Positions 1 through 14,226 are shown, numbered from the stretch's first letter. The stretch is DNA of 15,108 nucleotides from Selaginella moellendorffii (GCF_000143415.4 NW_003314532.1:1-15108), one strand, 5' to 3'. Made by a program: numbers and translations. The notes: generated by a model not told the origin, from the letters alone.

Positions 1-1070
1 CCCAAATTACCTAAGGTATTCCGGTAGCCAATGCTGCTGAGGTAATAGCAGCAGTGATCATGACTCCCAACTGGCCATCAGTGAGACGAGTGACACAGAC
101 ATCTCAAACTTCATAATTCAGGTGTTGAAGAATATTCATAGCTCTTCTTAGATACTGCCACAGTTTCCTCCCTGCTCTAAAAGACATTTCAAATTCTTTT
201 AAGGCTTGTTAATCTCAACCAGTAGATTTTGGCATATGCTTAGTTCCTAGCATTTGACATTATGAAACTAGCTTATTCATTTAAATATATAAGCACTAGC
301 AAGAGAATCCAGCTCCATTTAAAATATTAATATTAAATATAAAATTTTTAACAGTTTATTTAAAATACTTTTAAAAAATTTGGTGTCCAACATCTACCTT
401 TATTTAATAATATTATTAATAAATCACGAGTCAAGCCAAGTTGTAAGAACATGAAACATTCCTAGATCATATAGTTGTTTTTATAGTTAAAACTTAGAGC
501 GTACAAAATCTAAGAATTTTAAACTTTATATCTAAAAGAATAAGTTCTAATTAGAAAATAATTTATAAAAATAAAATATGACCCATAATTAATAGCAAAG
601 AAATGTTTAACAAAATTAAAGACATTTGACACTCATAGCATACGTTAGATTTATTTATTTATAAGTAAGTTGATACACCACATTATAATCATAATTTGTA
701 ATGGACTTATCAAAGATATATACCAATCACCTCAAATGAAAACAAATAAAAACACACTAAATTTTTTAAAGTGATATGTTAAATATCTTAATATAAAAAT
801 TATAAAACATAAATCAACAACATCTATTGCAATTACTATAAAAAATAAAATTTAGTTTTCTTATAAATATATTTTAACATATTTCTTTTATAGCAAAAAA
901 AAACAATATTAGATAAGAATAATAATATAGAGCAATCTATTGTATTAAGGCAATTATAATTAGTTCTCAGCTGTTAGATCTTAAGCATGTGCCTAGAATA
1001 AGTATTGGCTTTTACATTTAACATATGAGTATATGAGTTTCAGTTTCACTGGATGTTAATTTAAAAATTA

Positions 1071-1184
1071 TAGTTTAATACAATTATAGTTTCTATATTA
1101 TTAATTTTCTGTCTAAGAAAGTTTTGTTAAATTTGATAACATTCTTTGATATGCTATAAGAGACACATGTTAGGATATATTAGA
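1071..1184 (+). repeat. Left arm of a long inverted repeat bounding the Fic island
   Basis: 1114-1151 (taagaaagttttgttaaatttgataacattctttgata) is the exact reverse complement of 5097-5134. Similarity extends outward (tagtttaataca...ttctatattatta vs taataatatagaa...tgtattaaacta) and inward (tatgctataagagacacatgttagg...atattaga vs tctaatat...ccaaacatgtatcccttatagcata), with ~10-bp indels. Confidence 0.9.
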
Positions 1185-1286
1185 GCTCCTTGCCAAGAAA
1201 TCCATGCCCGTCAATCATCGAGTCTATGTCTTTTCTTCAGGGACAAAACAATTGATATAAGCCATCACTACCCCCTTCTCTACGTG

Positions 1287-1519
1287 ATGGAGTACTACGC
1301 AATTGAAAGGAGGGCAATTCCAGTCCGGACGATCGTCACCACCGGGGTTTGTGCCTGTGGTTTCCAAGCAAAAAGGTTGGTGCTGCTTACCATGTGCTAA
1401 GTGCTGGTGCTGGTCACCAACGCTTACGTAGCCCCCAGCCCAACCCAGAGTTTACAGCTTCCGTGGTGGCTCCAAAAGCCCGAGCCAACTTCCAGGTTTC
1501 CAAGATGGCCATGAGATGA
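1287..1519 (+). CDS. Possible small spliced ORF (58 aa, MEYYAIERRAIPVRTIVTTGVCACGFQAKSPQPNPEFTASVVAPKARANFQVSKMAMR); unknown function
   Basis: TATAA-like motif near 1256, ATG at 1287, candidate 56-nt GT..AG intron 1376-1431 that restores frame to TGA 1517-1519. No recognisable homology. Confidence 0.2.
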
Positions 1520-2033
1520 GCATGGGAGGACTTTTCTATCTATGTTGGATGGTCTGATGCGAGAACAGTGGCTTGGAGCGAAGGTCGATCGAACATTAGT
1601 AAGTCGATAAAGGCTAACCTCAAGAGCAGGGAGCCAAGTTTGAGATGTGTCACCTGCGGCCCGTTTAGACTTGGATTTCCGGAGATAGTGGTGAGCAAGG
1701 CAAGGCTGGTAAGCCACTGTCAGACAGGCAGCGAAAAGGCGAGAGCGATTCCATAGACGAGCTCGTCCAGCAAATATTCATGCATGACACGTTAGTCAGG
1801 TAAGCCCCATCTTATAGCAAAGCTGTAAACGAAGGGGATCTGTCCTCACGAAAGCATCCATTGCTAGTTTTCACTGGAGCATGCCATGGATAGTTGTGCT
1901 CAAGGAAAGTTTTTGAGTTGTCTTGGTTCACAGCTTTTTATTGGACAATGCAGAAGTTCTAGCGTAGTCATGTAAAGAAGTAGAAAAGAAAAAAAATACC
2001 AGGACAAACTTTCCCCTGTCTTCCTGTTCGAGA

Positions 2034-2861
2034 TCACTGGAGCTTCGATTTAAGGAACTCTCTCCATGCAGCGTCTGTTCCCTGGAGGCTGCCGAGTAGA
2101 ATCTTTGCCAGCTCGTCTTCGTCATCCTCCTCGAAAGCAGTGATGAACCTGTCCCGGGATCCGTGCTCAGCTGCAGTGAAGAAGGCCGCTGGGAAGGCTG
2201 AAATGCGACGCAGCAGGTGCAGCGCAAGCAGGCGTCCAACACGCCCATTACCATCTTCAAACGGATGGATCTTCTCGAAGTCGATGATGAGCCTTGCGAC
2301 CGTGGAGGCCCATTTGGCGATGCTCAGCTTGCTCTTGCTGTGCTCCGCGATGCTTGCATTGAGACGGTCCAGGAACTTCCGCATCTTGACCTGGATGTCT
2401 CGGGGATGTGCGTAACTCTTTCCAGCAGAGGACATGGCACCATAACTGCGGAATGCCGAGACCGGTGTCAGCTGTAAAGCTTCGTGCAGTTGTAACAGCT
2501 GCAGGGTCGTGATGGGTGAGCTCTCCGGCCAGGACCTGATGACGGCAAGACCTCTCAAGAGCCCTGCGGATCGAGCAGGATCGTCCAAGCCATGGGACGT
2601 AGCAACTTTGATAGCTTGGGTGTCCCAGAAGGCCTCAAACCTGGAGTAGATTGGATAAGTACGTGGAGAGAGCTGCGACATAAGACATACCAGAAGCCTG
2701 CGTGGTTGGACGGTGTAAGCAGTGGTTCTGGCTCCTTCTCCTTGCCAGCTTTTCCCCTTGGTTTCCTCACTGCAATATAAGCAAACACTATACGAGGTTG
2801 AGAGATCGAAATGCATACCAGCACTTCGGACGAGATTCAGAGCCGCGCGCCGCCCATCCAT
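2034..2861 (-). CDS. Fic/DOC-domain protein (putative AMPylase), probably spliced: exons 2861-2819, 2769-2691, 2640-2034 (242 aa)
   Basis: Canonical Fic motif HPFEDGNGRVGR at 2267-2232, preceded by the usual 'LLQLHEAL' helix and 'FR' flap region. Two canonical introns, GTATGC..TTGCAG (2818-2770, 49 nt) and GTATGT..CTCCAG (2690-2641, 50 nt), give an in-frame product MDGRRAALNLVRSAVRKPRGKAGKEKEPEPLLTPSNHAGFWFEAFWDTQ... Confidence 0.88.
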   Translation of the reverse strand: MDGRRAALNLVRSAGMHFDLSTSYSVCLYCSEETKGKSWQGEGARTTAYTVQPRRLLVCLMSQLSPRTYPIYSRFEAFWDTQAIKVATSHGLDDPARSAGLLRGLAVIRSWPESSPITTLQLLQLHEALQLTPVSAFRSYGAMSSAGKSYAHPRDIQVKMRKFLDRLNASIAEHSKSKLSIAKWASTVARLIIDFEKIHPFEDGNGRVGRLLALHLLRRISAFPAAFFTAAEHGSRDRFITAFEEDDEDELAKILLGSLQGTDAAWREFLKSKLQ

Positions 2862-3174
2862 GATACCAGCCGAGAGAAATTCACAAGTCCTGTGACCCTA
2901 GGAAGGTGCATTTCATGGAATCGTTGGAAATATGGCAATATCGATCTCCATACCTACACAGGCCGCGAGTTGCTCTTGGATCCTAGCTCTGCAGCAAGAA
3001 AAGGTAGCTGAGCGCTACACACCCGGGGCGAGAGGAGAAATCGATCGCTGACGCTGAGCCGGCCCGATCCAGCTAACAGGGAGCGATCTAGAGCAAGAAA
3101 CTATGAAATTTCGTTGTGATCGACCGAAGCGCCTACCCTGCGCTGGCGCTGGATCAATCGTTCACCCCGCCAGC

Positions 3175-3198
3175 GCCATCGCCATCGCCATCGCCATC
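3175..3198 (+). repeat. (GCCATC)4 hexamer microsatellite
   Basis: gccatc gccatc gccatc gccatc read directly. Confidence 0.9.
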
Positions 3199-3317
3199 GC
3201 GCTCACGCCGTCGCCTCGCCAAGCCCTGAAGAATGAGCTTGCGCCGACAGCCAATTATCGCGTGCCGCGTGTCAAAGCCCGGGAAATTCAAATGTACCCC
3301 TTTTCAAACCTTGGCTG

Positions 3318-3324
3318 TATAAAA
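3318..3324 (+). promoter_or_regulatory. TATA box upstream of the second Fic gene
   Basis: TATAAAA in GC-rich context, starting 41 bp upstream of ATG 3359 and 107 bp upstream of the better-context ATG at 3425 (agcATGG). Confidence 0.6.
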
Positions 3325-3358
3325 GGGGGCCCTTCTGGGTTGAGGCTAGGGCATATAG

Positions 3359-4279
3359 ATGGGGCGATACGCGGAGAGGCCCTTCTGGAGGTGCGATGGC
3401 GACGGAGCCCCGGCGACGAGCAGCATGGTGGACGCCATTTGTGGGTACGTGAAGAGGTTCCAGGCCCTGGACGGCGATGCCAAAGCATGGGCGCTGGACG
3501 TGTACGGGCAGCGCGACGCTATGGCCGACTTCCTCTTCCAGGTGAACAAGCTGGAGCTGGAAGGCTTTGATACCCGGGACCAAACACTCCACGCCCTGGA
3601 GCAGCTCCACGAAGTGGTGGCTCCAGACGAGAGATTGGAACAAGTCCGCTGCCTGTCCCGAGCATTCAACGCATGGTGGCTCCAGGAGGAGAAGGCCGAG
3701 GAGGCTCCCAGCGTCAACAACTACAAGCTCAGGCAGTCACACGAGCTTCTTATGGAGCCGAGCAGGCCGGAGATCGCAGGCTTGTTTCGTTCCGGCAGCG
3801 AGGTTGCAATGACGATCACGAGCAGCGGAAGGCAGCACTTCTACGCGGATGCCTGGGCAATCCGGCCCAAGTTGTCCAAGTTGGTGAGCAAGACTAACGC
3901 GGATGTGGAGCGGCTCTTTGAGGAGGAGGCGACGACAAGGAGCTGCAAGACGGTGGAGCAGCTCCTGGTGCTGGCCTCGGACTTCTTCTACAAGTTTGAG
4001 TGCATCCATCCGTTTGTGGATGGGAATGGGCGATGCGGGAGGATGATGCTGGCCTACTTGCTTCGCAGCGTGGCTGTGTTCCCCAATGTCTTGTTCGCTG
4101 CTGGCGCTGGCCGCCAGCACGAGTTTGTAGACCGGGATGTCTACCTCAAGTGCTTCGAGAGTGCTCGCGAGGATGACCACGAGCCCAGGGACCTGACTGC
4201 TCTCATCATAGAGGGGGTCTACTTCGGTTGGCAGAGGTTCTTTGTGGCCCTCGAGTCGTGGCAGGGCCTCAAGTTGTAG
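3359..4279 (+). CDS. Fic/DOC-domain protein (putative AMPylase), intronless, 306 aa (or 284 aa from ATG 3425)
   Basis: Canonical motif HPFVDGNGRCGR at 4007-4042; 'LRQSHELLM...AGLFR' pre-flap elements; N-terminal FQVNKLELEG resembling an inhibitory helix; GC-rich third codon positions. Confidence 0.92.
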   Translation: MGRYAERPFWRCDGDGAPATSSMVDAICGYVKRFQALDGDAKAWALDVYGQRDAMADFLFQVNKLELEGFDTRDQTLHALEQLHEVVAPDERLEQVRCLSRAFNAWWLQEEKAEEAPSVNNYKLRQSHELLMEPSRPEIAGLFRSGSEVAMTITSSGRQHFYADAWAIRPKLSKLVSKTNADVERLFEEEATTRSCKTVEQLLVLASDFFYKFECIHPFVDGNGRCGRMMLAYLLRSVAVFPNVLFAAGAGRQHEFVDRDVYLKCFESAREDDHEPRDLTALIIEGVYFGWQRFFVALESWQGLKL

Positions 4280-4447
4280 CGACCTCATACTTACCTCTCG
4301 CCCTCGAGAGGTTGCTCGAGCTCGCTTTCCAGCTCTATTTTTTCCTGGAAAGACCACCTGCCTTCCTCGGCCGCGTGTCAATGAAGAAAGCGAGCGACCC
4401 AAACATACCTTTGGACTGCCTCCAGTACTAGATGCACCGATCCATCG

Positions 4448-4808
4448 TCAAGCTTTCTGCTCGGCCGAACAAAAACTCTATGAGGAAGCATGGCAAAAGC
4501 TCACTACGTGACCAGGAACAAAGGGAGGAAAGCTTTACCTGATCGAAGGAGGTGCTCGTCTTTGCGTGATCATCCCTGGAGCTTTGCATGCCCCAGATTC
4601 CAACGACGATCTCTCCACGACTTTGAGCTAAACGAAACGTCTCGAGGATGCCTGCCGCACAGATCCTAGAAGCTTGACGATCTCTGGAAGGAAAGGAAAA
4701 CAACGACATATCGTCGCGCAATGCAGGCAGATCTTACTCGCGTGATTCCACCAGCGCAACCCTGGCGACATCGAAGAGCTTCACATTCTCGCCTCCAGCG
4801 ATCCTCAT
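4448..4808 (-). CDS. Possible small three-exon gene (81 aa; exons 4808-4738, 4683-4539, 4477-4448) convergent with the second Fic gene; unknown function
   Basis: Strong donors GTAAGA (4737) and GTAAAG (4538) and pyrimidine-rich acceptors (..ttcctttccttccag 4684; ..cttcctcatag 4478) define introns of 54 and 61 nt. Splicing gives an open frame MRIAGGENVKLFDVARVALVESREDRQASRICAAGILETFRLAQSRGEIVVGIWGMQSSRDDHAKTSTSFDQSFCSAEQKA. A TA-rich box lies at ~4931-4946 upstream. Confidence 0.35.
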
Positions 4809-5047
4809 CCACCCCGAACAAGAACAAGAGAGAGAAATTAAACCCCAGAAAGGGACACCCGCAGGAATCGAACGCGTAACGGGACTTGGTGCGCAAAGAA
4901 TATTCGGCTCGTGATCCCCTTGTCATGTTGTATATATAAAACTATATACTACTCACTATATATTTAGAAATGTTAATTGCTTGCAGCTCATTGCAAATGC
5001 TCAGGAGAAAAGGCCAGAGCCTGAGGGACGTCTTAGGAGGGGATTTT

Positions 5048-5167
5048 TCTAATATGATGATGCCAAACATGTATCCCTTATAGCATAGTGTGATGGTATC
5101 AAAGAATGTTATCAAATTTAACAAAACTTTCTTATAATAATATAGAAAATTTAAATGTATTAAACTA
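5048..5167 (-). repeat. Right arm of the long inverted repeat bounding the Fic island
   Basis: 5097-5134 is the perfect reverse complement of 1114-1151, and flanking blocks also match with small indels. Confidence 0.9.
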
Positions 5168-7031
5168 GAAACTAGATAAATCCATCTAACATTATTAGTC
5201 TTAACATTATTAGGAGAAACTGATCAACCAGGGATGGCATAATGATCTTGAGGAAGAATCAATTCCCTCTCCAGCACTGTCCAACTTTTCTGCATACTCC
5301 ATCGAAGCTCACATAGTTTAGTTTGAAATGCAAAATCAATGTCACTCTTAGGTGGAATGCTTTTTTTGGTACATGAGGTAAAATGGATCCATTGCAGCCC
5401 TCAAAGAAATAACACACCAAAGGAAGCTTGCTGCTCTAGAGCAAATGAACATCCTCAAGAAGTTGGAAATGTCCCAGAAAAGGTGGTAGAGCTACAACAT
5501 GTGGATCAATGTGGTACCTACAAAATAGATAGCAATAAAAAGATAAGGACTTTACTGGAAAGAGTGTTTGCTCCAAAACAAAATACCTGTGAAGACCAAA
5601 TTCAACATGTGAATAACATTCCATAATTTCTTATGATTAAGCTATCAATTCCCATGGTTGATAAGAGCCATCCAAGTGATGGCATGAAAATGCTACAACC
5701 TTTGATGGGATACAGCCAATTCGTCCCATGTTGGATTTGCCATCACCAATCGAGGCTGTACACTGTCTGTACAGTGAGCGAGAGGAAGTAAATGTGGAAA
5801 AGGTGTTTGCCACTATCTTTCTCTTCTGGTTTGCTGCAAATATAACCAAAATTTCTCTTCACCAAGTACAAGGTACAATTTGTTAGTATTTTCTTCTCAA
5901 AAAACTTATAAAGCATGCTATTAAAGCTTTCTTGACATGCTCACCATCAAGATGAAGCTCAATTTTCTAATTAAAAACAAATTCGTGGATAAGATAAACA
6001 AGCCAAGGTACAACCCCGTCCAAAGAATTGAACATTGCTCTAATCCTCATGCTTGTTCTTGTTATACATAGAATATATGAAGAAGGCCTTCTTACCAAGG
6101 CAGTGCTTACCTTCATCAACCCGAGCTTTCAAAATCTTCTATTTTCTGGCCAACAGCTTTAAGCAGTGTTTTATTTCGGCTGCCAAAAAGCCATTTGAAA
6201 TGACTTTTTGGCAGAGAAAATGTTAAGCTTTAATACAAATTAGTGTCATTTGAAAAGTCTGTTGCCGGCAGTGGCTGGGCCGACAATTTCCTTAAGCAGC
6301 CTAAAAATTAAAGGAATTCAAAGAACCTGCAAGTTGCTTGAATGAAAACCCTTAATCCATGTATATCAGTAATAGCCCTGAAAACCTGAATATGCATCAA
6401 ATCGCCATCAAATATTTTCTCTTGCAGGGTTAAAGGTTCAAGGGTTATGCTTAATTAAACAGTCATAATTATTCAAAATGCCAAAAAGTAGCTTTGAATA
6501 AAACCCTGGCTTCAAGTAATTCATGAGCAGTCACAGTCCATCAAAAATCATTTTGGTAGAAAGCTTTTTGATTTTACCTGAGTGGTGCTTTCCACACCAC
6601 GGCTTGAATCTCACCACAGATTGCTGCAGTAGCATATGTTTGCAACGGCCGGGAAGCTGAAGGATTTTGAGGGGATTCTGGGCAAGAGGAGTGAGGGTGT
6701 GTGAGGGAGTTTGCACGGAAATTGGGAGATCCTTCACAGCATGAGCAGTGACCAAAGTAGCAACAGTGGTCTCTTGCTTTAATCCAGTGCCAACACTTGC
6801 AAGACTTCCTCCGACTGAAAAACAAGGAAATGTTTTAAGTTCATGTGAAACTTGCGAGAGCCTTAACTTGGATGTCAAAGACTTCACCAAGCTTCCAAAG
6901 CTCCAATCACTGCAGACAATGGAAGGACACAGCCATTAAGCTGTATAAATCCCTGATAATATGAGCAACTGACACTCCATCAGCATAGAGAAAGGAAAAT
7001 AGGGAGTGCTGTAAGAATAGAAGATATCGAG

Positions 7032-7068
7032 GTGTGTGTGTGTGTGTGTGAAAGAGAGAGAGAGAGAG
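7032..7068 (+). repeat. Compound microsatellite (GT)9-(AG)8
   Basis: gtgtgt... at 7032-7050 followed by aa and agagag... at 7053-7068. Confidence 0.95.
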
Positions 7069-10000
7069 AAGGGATCGGGAAAGCTCCTCCTTTGGCAGAG
7101 ACTCTCTTTTGTTCCACCAGAGGCATCCAATAAAATAATTCTCACGTCCATTACAGAGGCTTGCATGGGCTTTCTTCATTGATCTTGCCTTTGCTGTTGG
7201 CTACAAAAAATCTGGAAAGAACGGGATGTTGGTGACTGCATAACAAGCTTGGAGCCACAGTTCATTCTGCCCACGTCCTTCATTAGGCCACACCTCACCT
7301 CCTCTAGCGATGACTCTTTGCTACCTTTGCCAACAGCAACTCCACCAACATCCCTGTAGCTCCTCCTCTGCCAGTTGCTTCACCTCCCACGTCACTCCAT
7401 CACCCTTTCCAGGAACACTGGTGCTCTGTCCCTGCCAGCATTTATACTAAATATGCTATAGCCATAGATCATGAATAGAACAAGAACATTGCACTATTCC
7501 TCAAGAATAAAAGCACTTTCACAATCTGCCCCCCACAATCTACCCTAAAAGATTACAACGATTTCAATCGTCACCACCTCTTTGCCACATGTAAGAATTG
7601 TAACCCTCCATTTGGAGAGTAACAAATCTAATCTGTCTGATTAGGAGCATCCTTAAGTAAAATTCAATATTCTTAGAATGGAATAAAAAATGCCATATGC
7701 CAATAGCACTTTTAAATAAGGGAGTACTAGCAAAAGTCCCAACTACATTGGGAGCATCGTGTTTATTTCTGATGATTTAGTAATTTCAAAGAGTTGTAAT
7801 TAATTTTTAACATATTCATATTGATAACATACATAGCTAAACATAATATAATTTAGATATTATACAATTCAATGTGATTAGATTCATTGATGAATGTGTA
7901 ATAAGTATCATAAGTTTATTTGAAAAATAAAATTAATTTACAAATTAGAATAGCTGGAGCTATTCAACTTTTCTATTTTAAGTTATGAAATATATCATTT
8001 TAGTCAGTACTTATTTGATTTTAATGTTAAAGTATTCTTTTTATTGTGTCTACTATAAGCAACATTTGTACTAGAAAATTATGTTTAATTTTAATAATTT
8101 AATGTTAATATTATGAGTATGATGATGCTGAGATTCCAGCTCCACTGGAAAATATAGATTAAAATAAATATGAAAAAATTCCAAAAGAATATTGAATTAT
8201 TTTAATCACAATTTTTAGTGACTCCTTTAGATATTAAAATAATTGTTTAAATGAAAGGTTTAAATAGTTTATAGTATAGTTGTAAAACTTTATATGAGTA
8301 ATGGAGAGAGTAGTTTTATGAATAATGTTTAGTGCTGATAAGTTTAAAACATATTAAGAGCATAAAAATAACTCTAATACCTTTTATAATAAATAAGAAA
8401 ACAGAATATACTAATAATTATTAATTAGAAGTAACTCTTTTATATTTCTCATTTGCAGAAATTGTATTGAGTTTATGCATGGAATAAAAGCCCACTTTCA
8501 TTCAAGCATAAAGCAATTTTTAATTATAGTGTAAAGTTTGTGTGTATTTAGAGAAAGAAGTGCCCCACCAAGGAGAAGAACAATGACTGAATTTACAAGT
8601 AAAGAGTATATTTGTTTGGAAAGAGTATGATTATTTTGGTTTACCCATTATTAGGAAATTAAAGTAGGTTTTGATTTATTGGGGATGTGATTTAGCTTTC
8701 AATGTTTCTAAAGACAGGTGCTTATCCATTAAATTTCATAAAAGGGGTTTGGGAAACATTGAGTGAAAGTGAAGCCATTGCTCTTGATATGGTAATGGTT
8801 TGAAGTTTCTTTCTGTAGCCTCCTACAAGGAACTCTCAGCTTGTCCAAATTTGATACTTATGTTAGCACTTAGGCTCTTAATGTTCTTAGAGGATTCTCA
8901 TGCAACTAAATCCAACAGGTGGTAAAGATCATTTGGAGAAATGGCTGTATACCTTTAAGTCAGTGATAGACCTTGCTATGATAATAATCCATGCCATCAT
9001 TGAAGTGTTTGTGGCTAAGAACCATACTCTTGGTTGAATCTAGTGCCACAGTCAATGCTCTAATCCCTTACACAGCATTCCTTACATAGCCTTGATTGTG
9101 TCTGTAGGAAAATCTGGGATTCAAGATCAATTTGTCTCTAGAGAAAAAAAACCTTGCTGCTAGAAAAAAATAAAACCAACCAGCAGCTGGTGCTTCAATT
9201 TGGTTCTTCCAAGCCTTTTTGAGGGAAATAATAGTTCTTAGCTTCATTAATGAATTATGTAGAGAAAATTGATGTTTTTATTTGTTTGTTTTGTAATATA
9301 AACACCAGCAAAATGACTATTAGACTTGAGCATAAGAAACTTGCCTTGTTAGCTCTTTTGTGCTCATTTGTGCGAGTCTCAAATGCAATTTTCCTTTACA
9401 AATTGCAATTATGACATTTTCCCCTCTAAAATTTTAGATTGCAGATATTGAGAATTTAAATGCAATTATTCTGGGATATGTTGCAGTAATCTGGTGTGAG
9501 GATTTATGTGCCAAATATTTTCTAGCACCTATCTAACCTTTACATATTTTACTAATCTAAATAACTGGATAACTACAACATATAAAAGTGATTTTCATGT
9601 ATTACCAATAATTAAAACTCTATTCTGAATATAATCACATTATAATGTTCATAAAAATATAAGTCATGTTGCACATTGTGAGGCACACATTCCATCTCGG
9701 ACACATCTCAATGATGGTTGTGATCTTTTGCAGGTCCATTTTTCTTTGGGGTTTCAGGGATTAGAGGGCTTGAATTGATCATTCTTCTTAAGCCAAGAGC
9801 AAATCAAATGAAATAGTAAGATGTAAATCTTTTAGAAATCATATTTAGGAAACTAAGTTGTAATTAAGGAGATAAATAAAAAGTTACATAAGGTTTAAAT
9901 TTATTTCACATAATAGATTTGTTCTGAGAGAGGATAGCTTCAAGGTTGGCAAGATTTTCCCCAAGAAACGAGGAAAAGAACTTCTAACATATCTCTCTCG

Positions 10001-10532: not shown

Positions 10533-13401
10533 CTAATCCCTTTGTACGAAGCTTTTTAGCCGCTGCACATGCACAATCTCTGGAGGATCGGCCTGCTGAA
10601 CATCATGCTGAACCTCATAAACTTGTGGTCCAATTTGTCGCAACACTCAATACGGTCCTTTCCATTGCACAAGAAGCCCCTTAGATAAACCACGTACCGT
10701 AAGATGGGGAAAACGGACTAACACCAAATCATCCACTTTGTACTCCGCAGGTGGACAATGATGGGAGTTGTAGCGCCGTTGTTGTCCCACTTGTATGCGG
10801 CTTAAGTGTTCGGCAGACTCTGCTCGGACAAGTGGAAGAATGCTCGTCAAATACTGATCCCATGATCTAGCATCGGTAGCATGTGGCAATTGCGAAGGTA
10901 AACCCAACTCCATTGGTAATATTGGATCATGATCATATAGGAGTTTATATGGTGAAGCACCAATAGAACTCTGCACCCCTGTAACATATGCATACCGAAG
11001 AGACAGCAAATAACCATCCCAATCCGAATGCTGAAAGTTCACATACTTCGCAATCATCCCTTTGAATGTCCGAACAAGCCGTTCCACCAGACCGTCTAAT
11101 TGTGGATGATAAGCACTTGTGAAAGTGTGGCATATCCCCAACCAAGACGTCAAAACATGAAATGCCTCAGCCATAAATGCGGGACTATTATCCGAAAGAA
11201 TCCGCTTTGGACAAGAATGCTGGAACACCACTCGATTGAGGAGGAAGTATCCAACAGCAATTGCAGAGGCGCTAGCAAGAGCACCAACTTCCACCCAACG
11301 AGTCAAGTAGTCAAAAGCAATAATAATATACTCATTGCCAGCAGTCAACCATGGAAAAGGTCCCATAAGATCGAACACCATTAACTCAAATGGACGGGAA
11401 ACCGCAATTGACTCCAACCGTCCTTCTGCAGCACGAGGGGGAGTATTACAAGCTTGGCACCAAACGCAGCTACGCACATACTGGATAATATCACGTTGCA
11501 TCTCCGGCCAATAGAAAGACCTGCGCAACTTCTCGGTAACACGACGGTGTCCCATATGCCCACCTAGAACAGAAGAATCATGGTAGGCATGGAAAAACCA
11601 TGGAATAAATACCAAAGGCACCACCAGCCGTAAATGATCATCAGGATTCGTCCCCACAAAATAAAGAAGGCCATCGTCAAGGCAATATTGAGAATGTAAA
11701 TGCCGGAAAGGAAAGTCATCAGCAAGGGATGCAGGATTCTCAAACCCATCTCGAAGCCTCTGAATCCACGGCTCAATCTTTTGAGCCTCGCGAACCTCAT
11801 CAAGAGAAGGTAGATCTTGCTCTGCACCTTGTGGACACTGAACGTCAAGGACAGCAACCGCCGACAGCACAGAATCCTCATCTAGAAAATCCACAGATGC
11901 TGGAACAACAGGTTTGTCAGAAATATGAGAAGTGAGTGGCGAAGGAAGAGGAGCTCGAGAAAGGGTATCAGCATCAGCCATAGAACTCCCTGGGCGATGA
12001 ACAACATCGAAATCATATATCTGAAACTTCAAAGCCCATCGAGCCGTACGACCAACCAGGTTTTTCCGCTTCAATAATGAAGTAACAGCAGCATGGTCAC
12101 CTTCAAGTAACGTCCGAGAACCATGTAGATAGGCATGAAGTTTCTCGAAACCCCAGACTGCTGCTAAACACTTCTTCTCCATCGTGGAGTAGTTCATCTC
12201 TACTGGTTGTAATGTACGGCTTATGTATGCAATAGGATGGCACTGACCCGGCACACTCGAGCTCTCTTGCATCAACACACCTCCAAGACCAATGTTAGAA
12301 GCATCCACGCGCAAAATAAAAGGTCGAGTGTAGTCAGGATATGCCAAAACCGGAGGAGTCGTCAATAGTTCTTTGAGATCCATGAATGCTTGCTCACAAT
12401 CCAGAGACCAGATAAAAGATGACGTTGATGACTTCAACAACGCTCGCAATGGTGTAGTGTGATCAGAAAGATGATCCACAAAAAGACCAAGATACTGCAC
12501 CTTACCCAAAAAGCGCTGCATATCATTCACACACTTCGGAGTAGGGAACTTTAGAACAGCCATAAGTTTGTTAGGATCAACTTGCAAACCCTCACGAGAA
12601 ATACGGTACCCAAGATAAGTTGTGTCCTTGGACCCAAACACACACTTTGACCGCTTCAGCTTTAAACCAATGTCGCGTAGCCGATCCAACACTTTACAAA
12701 CATCACGAACGTGCTCCTCCCACGTCCCCTCCGAGTGGATCAAGACATCATCAATGAAGTCAGCAGTCACCTCTGGCATATCACAAAGAACCTCGTCCAT
12801 CATCCGCTGGAAAGTTGCTGGAGCATTGTTCAAATCAAACGGCATCACCAAGAACTCGTACAAACCAAATGGTGTACGAAAAGCAGTCTTAGGAATATCT
12901 TCTTCGGCCATCAGTACTTGCCAATACCCAGAAGCAAGACCTAGCTTGGTGAACCAACGACTTCGCCCCAGACAATCCAAGAGATTAGCAGTGTGAGGAA
13001 GAGGATACACATCTTTTAATGGACGATAGTCGATTACTTCGTCCACTCACTTCGTTTAATGGACGATAGTCGATGCAGAAACGAATACTCCCATCAGGCT
13101 TCGTCACAAGATGAAGTTCATATGTCCAAGGACTCCGCGACTTCCGAATAACACCCTTCTCTAGCATTTCCTTGACGTTTGCTCGTAAAATCTTGATCTC
13201 CTTAGGTGATCGACGATGAACAAGAACCTTGATTAGACGAGCATCCCCGGTTGGAATCGGATGACGTGTGGCAATCTTGGCCCCAAAAAATAAGTCAAAT
13301 TCAAAGAGATCAGAATACTCCTTCATGAGCCGGTCAACTGCTGCAACACAAAGATCGTCGGAGGGATCAGAAAAGGGAAAAGCAGAACAAGATGGAAACA
13401 C
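10533..13401 (-). pseudogene. pol: Gypsy pol pseudogene (RT, RNase H, integrase with GPY/F tail)
   Basis: RT: SPW..KPDGSIRFCIDYRPLN, KTAFRTPFGLYEFLVMPF, FIDD. RNase H: VDAS, DH, DTLSR. IN: H..H..CxxC, D-D-E (VFDLMGP, ILSDN, GLVER), WKGPY..VHVQRLK. Lesions: frameshifting insertion at ~13015-13055, KLGL for KLDL, PFDL for PFGL, EKK for EKE, premature TGA at 10647-10649. Confidence 0.92.
13015..13074 (+). repeat. 20-bp perfect direct repeat disrupting RT
   Basis: tttaatggacgatagtcgat at 13015-13034 and 13055-13074. Confidence 0.95.
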
Positions 13402-13626
13402 AAAAGGAAAGAGTGGGGGAACAAAAGTAATAGAAGCAGAGGTAGAAGTAGAGGGACGAAGAGGTATGGAAGTGAGAGGAATGGATGAAAGCCTGTGAGG
13501 ATCAAATAATCATCAAACAATCGATCCATACTTTCTATATCTCAAAAGCAAAGCTACCTCTATGTGCTCAAACGCATAGAAGGCCTTGTTGCTCTCTCGG
13601 TCTCTAGCACCATCAACCTTTTACCT

Positions 13627-13910
13627 TTAGGACGGAGAATGCTTGTCTATAAGCTCCTGGGAGAAGGTCCATAGCTTGTGAGCGAGCTCGGGATCTCTAC
13701 CATAAGCACTACAGTTGGATTTGTTGGACTCCACGAAGTATTGCCTGGTGATGTCCTTGAGGCTTGGATGTAAAGCTGTGTAGCACGTTGTAGCAGCGCC
13801 CTGAGAGATCAATCACGTATTAGTCATGAAAAACTTCCAGATAATTGGGAGAATTCTTCTTACCTGTGGCACATTTTTCCAAAGGAAGCTGGAGAAGAAC
13901 TTGAGAATCC
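13627..13910 (-). pseudogene. Last two exons (13910-13864, 13800-13627) of a Tic32/retinol-dehydrogenase-like short-chain dehydrogenase; upstream exons absent
   Basis: ILKFFSSFLWKNVPQ|GAATTCYTALHPSLKDITRQYFVESN...DPELAHKLWTFSQELI matches the C-terminal pattern of plant RDH/Tic32-like SDRs (K.VPQGAATTCY.ALHP...G.YF.D.N...D..LA.KLW.FS); 63-nt GT..AG intron. Confidence 0.8.
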
Positions 13911-13981
13911 CTGTATGAAGATCAAAGTTCCATAAGTAACCAAAAGTTTTCTTGGTCTCTAGCACCATCAACCTTTTACCT

Positions 13982-14142
13982 TTAGGACGGAGAATGCTTG
14001 TCTATAAGCTCCTGGGAGAAGGTCCATAGCTTGGGAGCGAGCTCGGGTTCTCTGCCATAAGTGCTACAGTTGGATTTGTTGGAATCCACAAAGTATTGCC
14101 TGGTGACGTCCTTGAGGCTTGGATGTAAAGCTGTGTAGCACG
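13982..14142 (-). pseudogene. Second, 5'-truncated copy of the SDR last exon
   Basis: CYTALHPSLKDVTRQYFVDSNKSNCSTYGREPELAPKLWTFSQELIDKHSPS*; lacks the splice acceptor and the GAAT start of the exon. Confidence 0.8.
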
Positions 14143-14226
14143 ATGATGATTCTGGCTGCTTTCTCCTCACCAATCTTCTCGCAAATATGCTATATTTAAA
14201 AGACCAAATAATTATGGAATAACGCC

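Follow-up and report, generated by a model that had tools for sequence, protein, structure and literature searches.

Terminal inverted repeats (TIRs) of 100–150 bp, TA...TA termini and a 6-bp (rarely 7–8-bp) target site duplication (TSD) are described for GingerRoot of Selaginella lepidophylla, whose elements measure 3.9–12.9 kb and often hold gene fragments; Pack-MULEs have long TIRs with TSDs of 9–11 bp, and gene fragments are typical Pack-type cargo (PMC6839031). Fic proteins, according to a 2025 review, are absent from plants and fungi (PMC12409994). Here we analyse a 15,108-bp stretch of DNA (the window) from the spikemoss Selaginella moellendorffii, a lycophyte, in which two Fic genes lie between long inverted repeats, an arrangement that an initial annotation had put forward as a mobile or formerly mobile Fic module in a plant genome. 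The plant origin was correctly recognized: the window is the whole of scaffold GL377836.1 (L006) of the v1 assembly GCA_000143415.2, at 100% identity. As for its nature, we read the locus as probably, if by no means certainly, an ordinary nuclear gene cluster of S. moellendorffii flanked by relics of a small low-copy repeat. The Fic genes of this species contradict the review's statement that plants have none.

The cluster comprises two head-to-head single-exon Fic genes with a common upstream region of 497 bp, together with a small spliced transcript from the minus strand; it is bracketed by U2 and U3, inverted copies of an AT-rich unit of ~130–140 bp, with an older copy, U1, 117 bp to the left of U2. 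The parts on which the argument turns are as follows.

855–952, minus strand: U1, the third copy of the arm, degenerate and oriented like the right arm
1068–1195, plus strand: U2, the left inverted-repeat arm, AT-rich (24% GC)
2034–2861, minus strand: Fic1, a single-exon open reading frame (ORF) encoding 275 aa, HPFEDGNGRVGR motif intact
2862–3358, no strand assigned: GC-rich upstream region of 497 bp shared by Fic1 and Fic2
3359–4279, plus strand: Fic2, a single-exon ORF encoding 306 aa, HPFVDGNGRCGR motif intact
5042–5170, minus strand: U3, the right inverted-repeat arm (23% GC)

The arms would most likely be relics of a small low-copy inverted-repeat element, a decayed DNA transposon or foldback of which solo or paired ends are left, sitting in the AT-rich intergenic DNA to both sides of the Fic genes rather than being ends shown to move these genes. 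The block itself would have spread by segmental duplication, with breakpoints indifferent to the arms.

Both proteins pass Pfam PF02661 (Fic1 with 52.4 bits, Fic2 with 49.4, the gathering cut-off being 24), and both have the catalytic motif HxFx(D/E)GNGRxxR, as HPFEDGNGRVGR in Fic1 and HPFVDGNGRCGR in Fic2; they share 30% identity over 183 residues, which bears out the initial description of two head-to-head ORFs with full Fic motifs but otherwise highly diverged. PF02661 is the sole Pfam match in either protein, with no match to TPR, and an NCBIfam search gave nothing beyond sub-threshold Fic-core matches. The AlphaFold2 (AF2) model of Fic2 has a pLDDT of 93, its first 19 residues being coil, and Foldseek matched it with probability 1.0 and TM ~0.65 to BT_2513, FICD and C. 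elegans FIC-1. For Fic1 the pLDDT is 78.5, with a confident Fic fold in the core (>90) and poorly predicted first ~100 residues. The top PDB matches of both models are all Fic proteins. Since all catalytic residues and the Fic fold are kept, both enzymes probably transfer AMP or another nucleotide-derived group to target proteins. The wider family has an N-terminal inhibitory pattern SN-x-G-E, which in Fic2 reads VNKLEL, with the Glu kept and the Ser and Gly/Asn replaced; because this glutamate of the N-terminal inhibitory helix is conserved (SxxxE in the family, here VNKLE), Fic2 probably inhibits itself in the manner of class II Fic enzymes, FICD among them. The corresponding region of Fic1 aligns poorly and has low model confidence. 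No N-terminal helix or evident hydrophobic anchor was predicted in either protein, although no dedicated transmembrane predictor was run, and this, together with the lack of a TPR match, suggests that both probably act in the cytosol or nucleus.

Fic1 and Fic2 correspond to the v1 genes SELMODRAFT_427920 and SELMODRAFT_427919, respectively, both of them mis-modelled. In four of four v1 models (these two, SELMODRAFT_419851 and SELMODRAFT_411522) the stretch with the catalytic motif had been removed as a false intron, and for that reason the four are without Pfam annotation; across the supposed intron, RNA contigs follow the genome colinearly. An exact look-up of the 306-aa Fic2 ORF found no entry, the public models being mis-spliced. 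About one-third of the stretch is represented in RNA-like runs of several studies. Contigs of two of these runs (X15 and X16) cover 3319–4986 colinearly and leave the AT-rich flanks uncovered, so that Fic2 can be called an expressed single-exon gene. Expression of Fic1 is barely detectable compared with Fic2, its RNA coverage being confined to 2273–2626 in one run at low depth, and in our tree Fic1 takes a very long branch (~5 changes per site) with no firm position within the family or next to it. Fic1 is a strongly diverged Fic member with weak expression. Over window positions 1767–2309 (the 3' half of Fic1 with its immediate downstream DNA) the summed contig depth of the deep DNA run X4 reaches 4–6 times the single-copy level, which hints at additional genomic copies of that part.

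S. moellendorffii has at least 10 Fic genes, with relatives in ferns, most of them concealed by models that splice out the catalytic motif. Fic2 is 88–98% identical to S. moellendorffii paralogues and, over its full length, 37–43% identical to proteins of the fern Adiantum nelumboides (including L7F22_068990) and to transcript-like contigs. SELMODRAFT_419851 and SELMODRAFT_411522 belong to the Fic2-type family as well. A profile search with the Fic2 family returned 301 representatives at E ≤1e-10; among the best matches were further S. moellendorffii genes (SELMODRAFT_444864, 410641, 447619, 422537, 418963 and 427298) and two RefSeq proteins, XP_024542721 being one, that are named "adenosine monophosphate-protein transferase fic-1". 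The tree joins Fic2 and its close paralogues, the S. moellendorffii loci L007–L009 and the fern proteins P0004–P0006 in one clade (support 96/93), and leaves outside it both L010 (XP_024542721, ~30% identical to Fic2) and a second Adiantum protein. On these sequence comparisons the Fic2 type is an old family common to lycophytes and ferns. Among the more distant relatives are genes found on the same contig as a PXA-RGS-PX sorting-nexin gene; the wider Fic family is therefore present in another eukaryote too and, as judged from these matches, is not restricted to plants. The four family genes whose surroundings we fetched are single or in tandem, amid housekeeping genes (PPR, ABC transporter, RNase III, Aquarius, SecY). 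Tandem same-strand Fic pairs were seen on S. moellendorffii GL377616.1 (L010, 10001–10966 and 11702–12835) and on the eukaryotic contig with the sorting-nexin gene (L011, 3876–5015 and 8001–9134).

The block recurs in the genome, in recent and in older copies. Scaffold GL377661.1 holds two further copies, 99.75–99.9% identical to the window (L004/L001 and L005), and, after a gap, a fourth, partial copy that is 100% identical; the recent copies there (three to four) lie in both orientations. Near-identical copies share flanks beyond the arms, from 37–1067 on the left and over 5171–5610 or up to 8056 on the right (L005 agrees with the window over 37–5610, L004 over 379–8056). Because flanks well outside the arms are shared, these copies represent a larger piece, present as haplotigs or segmental duplicates, and not transpositions of an arm-bounded unit. 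Two older paralogues differ more. L002 (GL377609.1) matches window 2593–4839 at 94%, with Fic2 intact and a Fic1 remnant that ends after 81 residues at a low-complexity repeat; L003 (GL377580.1) matches 1622–1771 and 3317–4288 at 82–89% and has Fic2 only. Both are without the arms or any other inverted repeat, and their breakpoints lie inside the block. The repeat that truncates the Fic1 remnant belongs to a GC-rich, highly repetitive low-complexity block, ~78–83% alike between L002 (7618–9218) and L003 (18353–20542), which may be a dispersed satellite-like repeat. A further difference among recent copies is an indel of 996 bp, 31 bp outside the right arm, which sets copy A (L004 6672–7668, at window 5201/5212) apart from the window and L005; there the window shows TAACATTATTAG twice, as a short tandem duplication, and no TIR or TSD was recognized.

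These copies also bear on whether Fic1 and Fic2 form a functional pair, since the initial annotation had considered a toxin/antidote-like selfish unit or a paired, two-enzyme defence module. The head-to-head layout around the common upstream region, the two intact catalytic motifs and the joint retention of both genes in the three to four recent copies are in keeping with such a pair, which we nevertheless regard as very improbable. Fic2 occurs without Fic1 in L003 and beside a truncated Fic1 in L002. The other fetched Fic2-type genes of the genome (L007, L008 and L009) stand alone, and for the Adiantum homologue the gene table lists no neighbouring gene within 10 kb. Nor did we find a small antitoxin-like partner with the inhibitory SxxxEG motif, and the weak expression of Fic1 relative to Fic2, like the age of a Fic2 family shared with ferns, speaks against the idea. 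The initially proposed check for divergent pairs among other Fic genes showed the fetched ones to be single or in same-strand tandem.

The GC-rich island set in very AT-rich DNA, as first described, holds for the interior (1196–5041, 54% GC) against the left flank (21%) and the arms (23–24%), with a sharp shift in composition at the inner ends of the arms, but the right flank has 38% GC. Ordinary S. moellendorffii genes in fetched loci (RRM proteins, histone, hydrolase) have 47–62% GC against 27–37% in intergenic DNA; the island is thus the usual gene/intergenic contrast of this genome and no sign of foreign origin. Horizontal transfer or a contaminant, when argued from the GC island, was ruled out on the same ground, ordinary S. 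moellendorffii genes being equal in GC. The nearest non-plant relatives of the Fic proteins are merely 21–29% identical, and at least one of these lies on a eukaryotic contig, which likewise counts against transfer or contamination. That assembly chimerism or contamination produced the island strikes us as scarcely credible. The window is, to be sure, a 15-kb scaffold, small and unplaced, and the draft assembly from which it comes includes both haplotypes. Yet the same arrangement, with both junctions, occurs at two further places of GL377661.1 and in contigs of independent runs, including the X4 genotype with its ~4% different flank; it is surrounded by a plant retrotransposon and plant gene neighbours, and RNA-like runs from several studies show its expression.

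We now turn to the arms. U2 and U3 have the perfect 38-bp inverted core initially reported (1114–1151 / 5097–5134) and an outer part of 36 nt that the repeat search aligned at 89%; in 100 shuffles of the window, made block-wise so that local composition was preserved, the longest exact inverted match was at most 22 nt, against the 38 observed. Long inverted arms are real, but their properly aligned length is ~130 bp (1068–1195 and 5042–5170) and not the ~115–120 bp first given. The gapped alignment of U2 and U3 has 91 matches, 13 mismatches and two indels (10 and 11 nt), for 87.5% identity at aligned positions. U1 holds both the 10-nt segment absent from U3 and the 11-nt segment absent from U2; the 11-nt segment of U1 and U3 was deleted in U2, and the 10-nt segment of U1 and U2 in U3. 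In the window scaffold U1 is short of ~32 nt of the core, which is at full length in the sister copy (L005 11900–12040), and an X4 contig has 38 additional letters at 892/898, within U1. Because U1 is only 70–74% identical to U2/U3, which are 87.5% identical to each other, the alignments place the arms in a small family of repeats that has three or more members at this locus, differing in age. The arm alignments show no similarity beyond the repeat unit on either side.

A profile of the three arm copies found no match in ~150 kb of other S. moellendorffii loci (including L002, L003 and L007–L010), a sample to which all our statements on dispersed copies refer. In X4 the arm bins have the lowest summed depth of the stretch (~800–1100, the single-copy level being ~1100–1500); standing at or below single-copy depth, the arms are not a common repeat at ≥85% likeness. 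Taken as a miniature inverted-repeat transposable element (MITE) or foldback, the unit U1-spacer-U2 (855–1195) has inverted arms and a fold z-score of −2.8, but no TSD, and no dispersed copies in the sampled loci.

Tests for mobility were negative throughout. We found no TSD of 3–11 bp at either candidate boundary and no shared word of 8–11 nt there even with one mismatch allowed; a 6-bp TSD is likewise missing (AAATTA vs GAAACT, 2/6 in register), and the alternative "inner" termini at 855/1195 have none. A TA next to the possible terminus GTTTAAT...ATTAAAC was considered as a Tc1/mariner-type TSD; it is compatible yet uninformative, because TA is palindromic and the inverted repeat runs past it. 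No contig joins 1068 to 5170, as an empty site would, in four sequencing runs, and in the X4 genotype, which differs by ~4% in the AT-rich flank, the left arm still stands beside the same flank. Between the arms there is no transposase and no ORF with a domain other than Fic. The initially proposed checks for 8–11 bp TSDs, empty sites and dispersed arm copies (the last also by X4 depth, where no excess was seen) have therefore left the claim of a mobile or formerly mobile Fic module unsupported.

Two further parts of the block remain to be described, the first of which lies directly inside the left arm.

1196–2033, no strand assigned: GC-rich non-coding patchwork, wrongly annotated in v1 as exons of SELMODRAFT_427920
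~4300–4990, minus strand: third transcription unit, yielding a spliced RNA (GT..AG introns 4457–4538 or 4478–4538)

Short stretches at 1183–1226 and 1330–1513 resemble other expressed transcripts, and 1622–1771 is ~82% like the non-coding DNA adjoining the Fic2 paralogue in L003. The minus-strand transcript, which like U1 had escaped the initial annotation, is annotated as a 108-aa hypothetical protein, but it has short ORFs only, without family match or SxxxEG motif. The shared upstream region of the Fic genes includes a (CGCCAT)x5.5 microsatellite (3168–3200), at which contigs of run X1 break. Pfam gave no match for any non-Fic ORF in and beside the block, and no Rfam family matched in the window.

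Several features weigh against an ordinary gene cluster with incidental repeat relics. The arms, with their 87.5% identity and perfect 38-nt core, face outward like true TIRs, and the GC-rich block almost exactly fills the space between their inner ends, where composition changes abruptly; possible TA...TA termini (TAG...CTA at 1071/5167) and the resulting length of 4097 bp fit the description of GingerRoot of Selaginella (PMC6839031); gene-like fragments, the patchwork that resembles other transcripts, lie directly inside the left arm; and ~150 kb of sampled loci, with contig depth informative at ≥85% likeness, leave room for a diverged arm family. Such features point to a decayed non-autonomous TIR DNA transposon, GingerRoot- or MULE-like and of Pack type, whose ~130-bp TIRs once moved the Fic genes and the fragments. 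We think this unlikely, though it is the rival that deserves the most serious thought, and we put lower still the chance that a decayed lycophyte transposon of this kind captured and carried complete, still expressed Fic genes. The TSDs of 6 bp and of 8–11 bp are absent, no family copy was found in the sampled ~150 kb and no excess arm depth in X4, and there is no transposase between the arms. Flanks outside the arms are common to all near-identical copies, the older paralogues break elsewhere, and the third arm copy only 117 bp away muddies the picture. The cargo, moreover, consists of complete expressed genes, against fragments in all reported GingerRoot acquisitions.

The arms might also have been born locally, by inverted duplication or repair-associated copying of short flanking DNA during rearrangement, without ever having been a transposon. 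Three arm copies within 4.3 kb and none elsewhere in the sampled genome would agree with this, as would the rearrangement-prone surroundings: the three to four near-identical copies on GL377661.1, which face both ways, the 996-bp indel at 31 bp outside the right arm, and pieces of retrotransposon nearby. U1, however, is much older than U2/U3 (70–74% vs 87.5%), so that at least two separate copying events would be needed, and similarity past the unit is missing on either side; we therefore hold a purely local origin to be improbable, and relics of a small low-copy element beside an ordinary gene cluster stay our preferred account.

The retrotransposon ORFs lie at 10647–13401 (minus strand) of the window, with a 799-aa Ty3/gypsy-type polyprotein ORF at 10647–13046 (reverse transcriptase, RNase H, integrase zinc finger and core) and a 138-aa ORF upstream of it. 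A direct repeat of 196 nt (95%) lies near the polyprotein ORF, at 13595–13790 / 13950–14145, and on GL377661.1 pieces of this region are found again, in either orientation, around the Fic copies.

A literature search on Fic domains in Selaginella found no paper. The genes described here modestly correct the textbook picture and provide a system in which AMPylation can be studied in a plant. A mobile Fic cassette bounded by inverted repeats, if true, would be a rare instance of a plant DNA transposon carrying whole enzyme genes, and capture by a transposon would mean that a land plant has an AMP-transferase module that is mobile, which would help account for the multiplication of Fic genes in Selaginella; since the evidence speaks against such a cassette, the repeat arms are at present a local curiosity.

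Compared with known systems, the block resembles GingerRoot in its ~130-bp outward-facing ends, possible TA...TA termini, length of 4097 bp, gene-derived content and lycophyte host, but differs in having no 6-bp TSD, no DDE transposase ORF between the arms and no family copies in the sampled loci. With Pack-MULEs it shares long TIR-like arms (at least ~100 bp) at both ends, the part of the initially suggested likeness that stands, but not the 9–11-bp TSD, nor arms shared with other members in that sample. Unlike either, it carries whole expressed genes, and duplicates of this cargo do not end at the arms; we do not file the block as GingerRoot or Pack-MULE. The class I Fic toxin-antitoxin systems (FicT/FicA, VbhT/VbhA) likewise consist of adjacent genes with a Fic enzyme whose active site is intact, but here both partners are full-length Fic enzymes on separate eukaryotic transcripts, with no small SxxxEG antitoxin. 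Animal FICD/HYPE differs from Fic1 and Fic2 (275 and 306 aa) in that the latter have no TPR match or evident N-terminal anchor segment. Closest are the class II Fic enzymes (Bacteroides BT_2513, 3cuc; human FICD/HYPE; C. elegans FIC-1), with which Fic2 shares its predicted fold, a complete HPFx(D/E)GNGRxxR motif and an N-terminal helix region with a conserved glutamate at the inhibitory-helix position. It is 15–19% identical to them, with Val for Ser/Thr and Leu for Gly/Asn in the inhibitory motif, and it belongs with single-exon proteins of ~300 aa that form a multigene family in a lycophyte.

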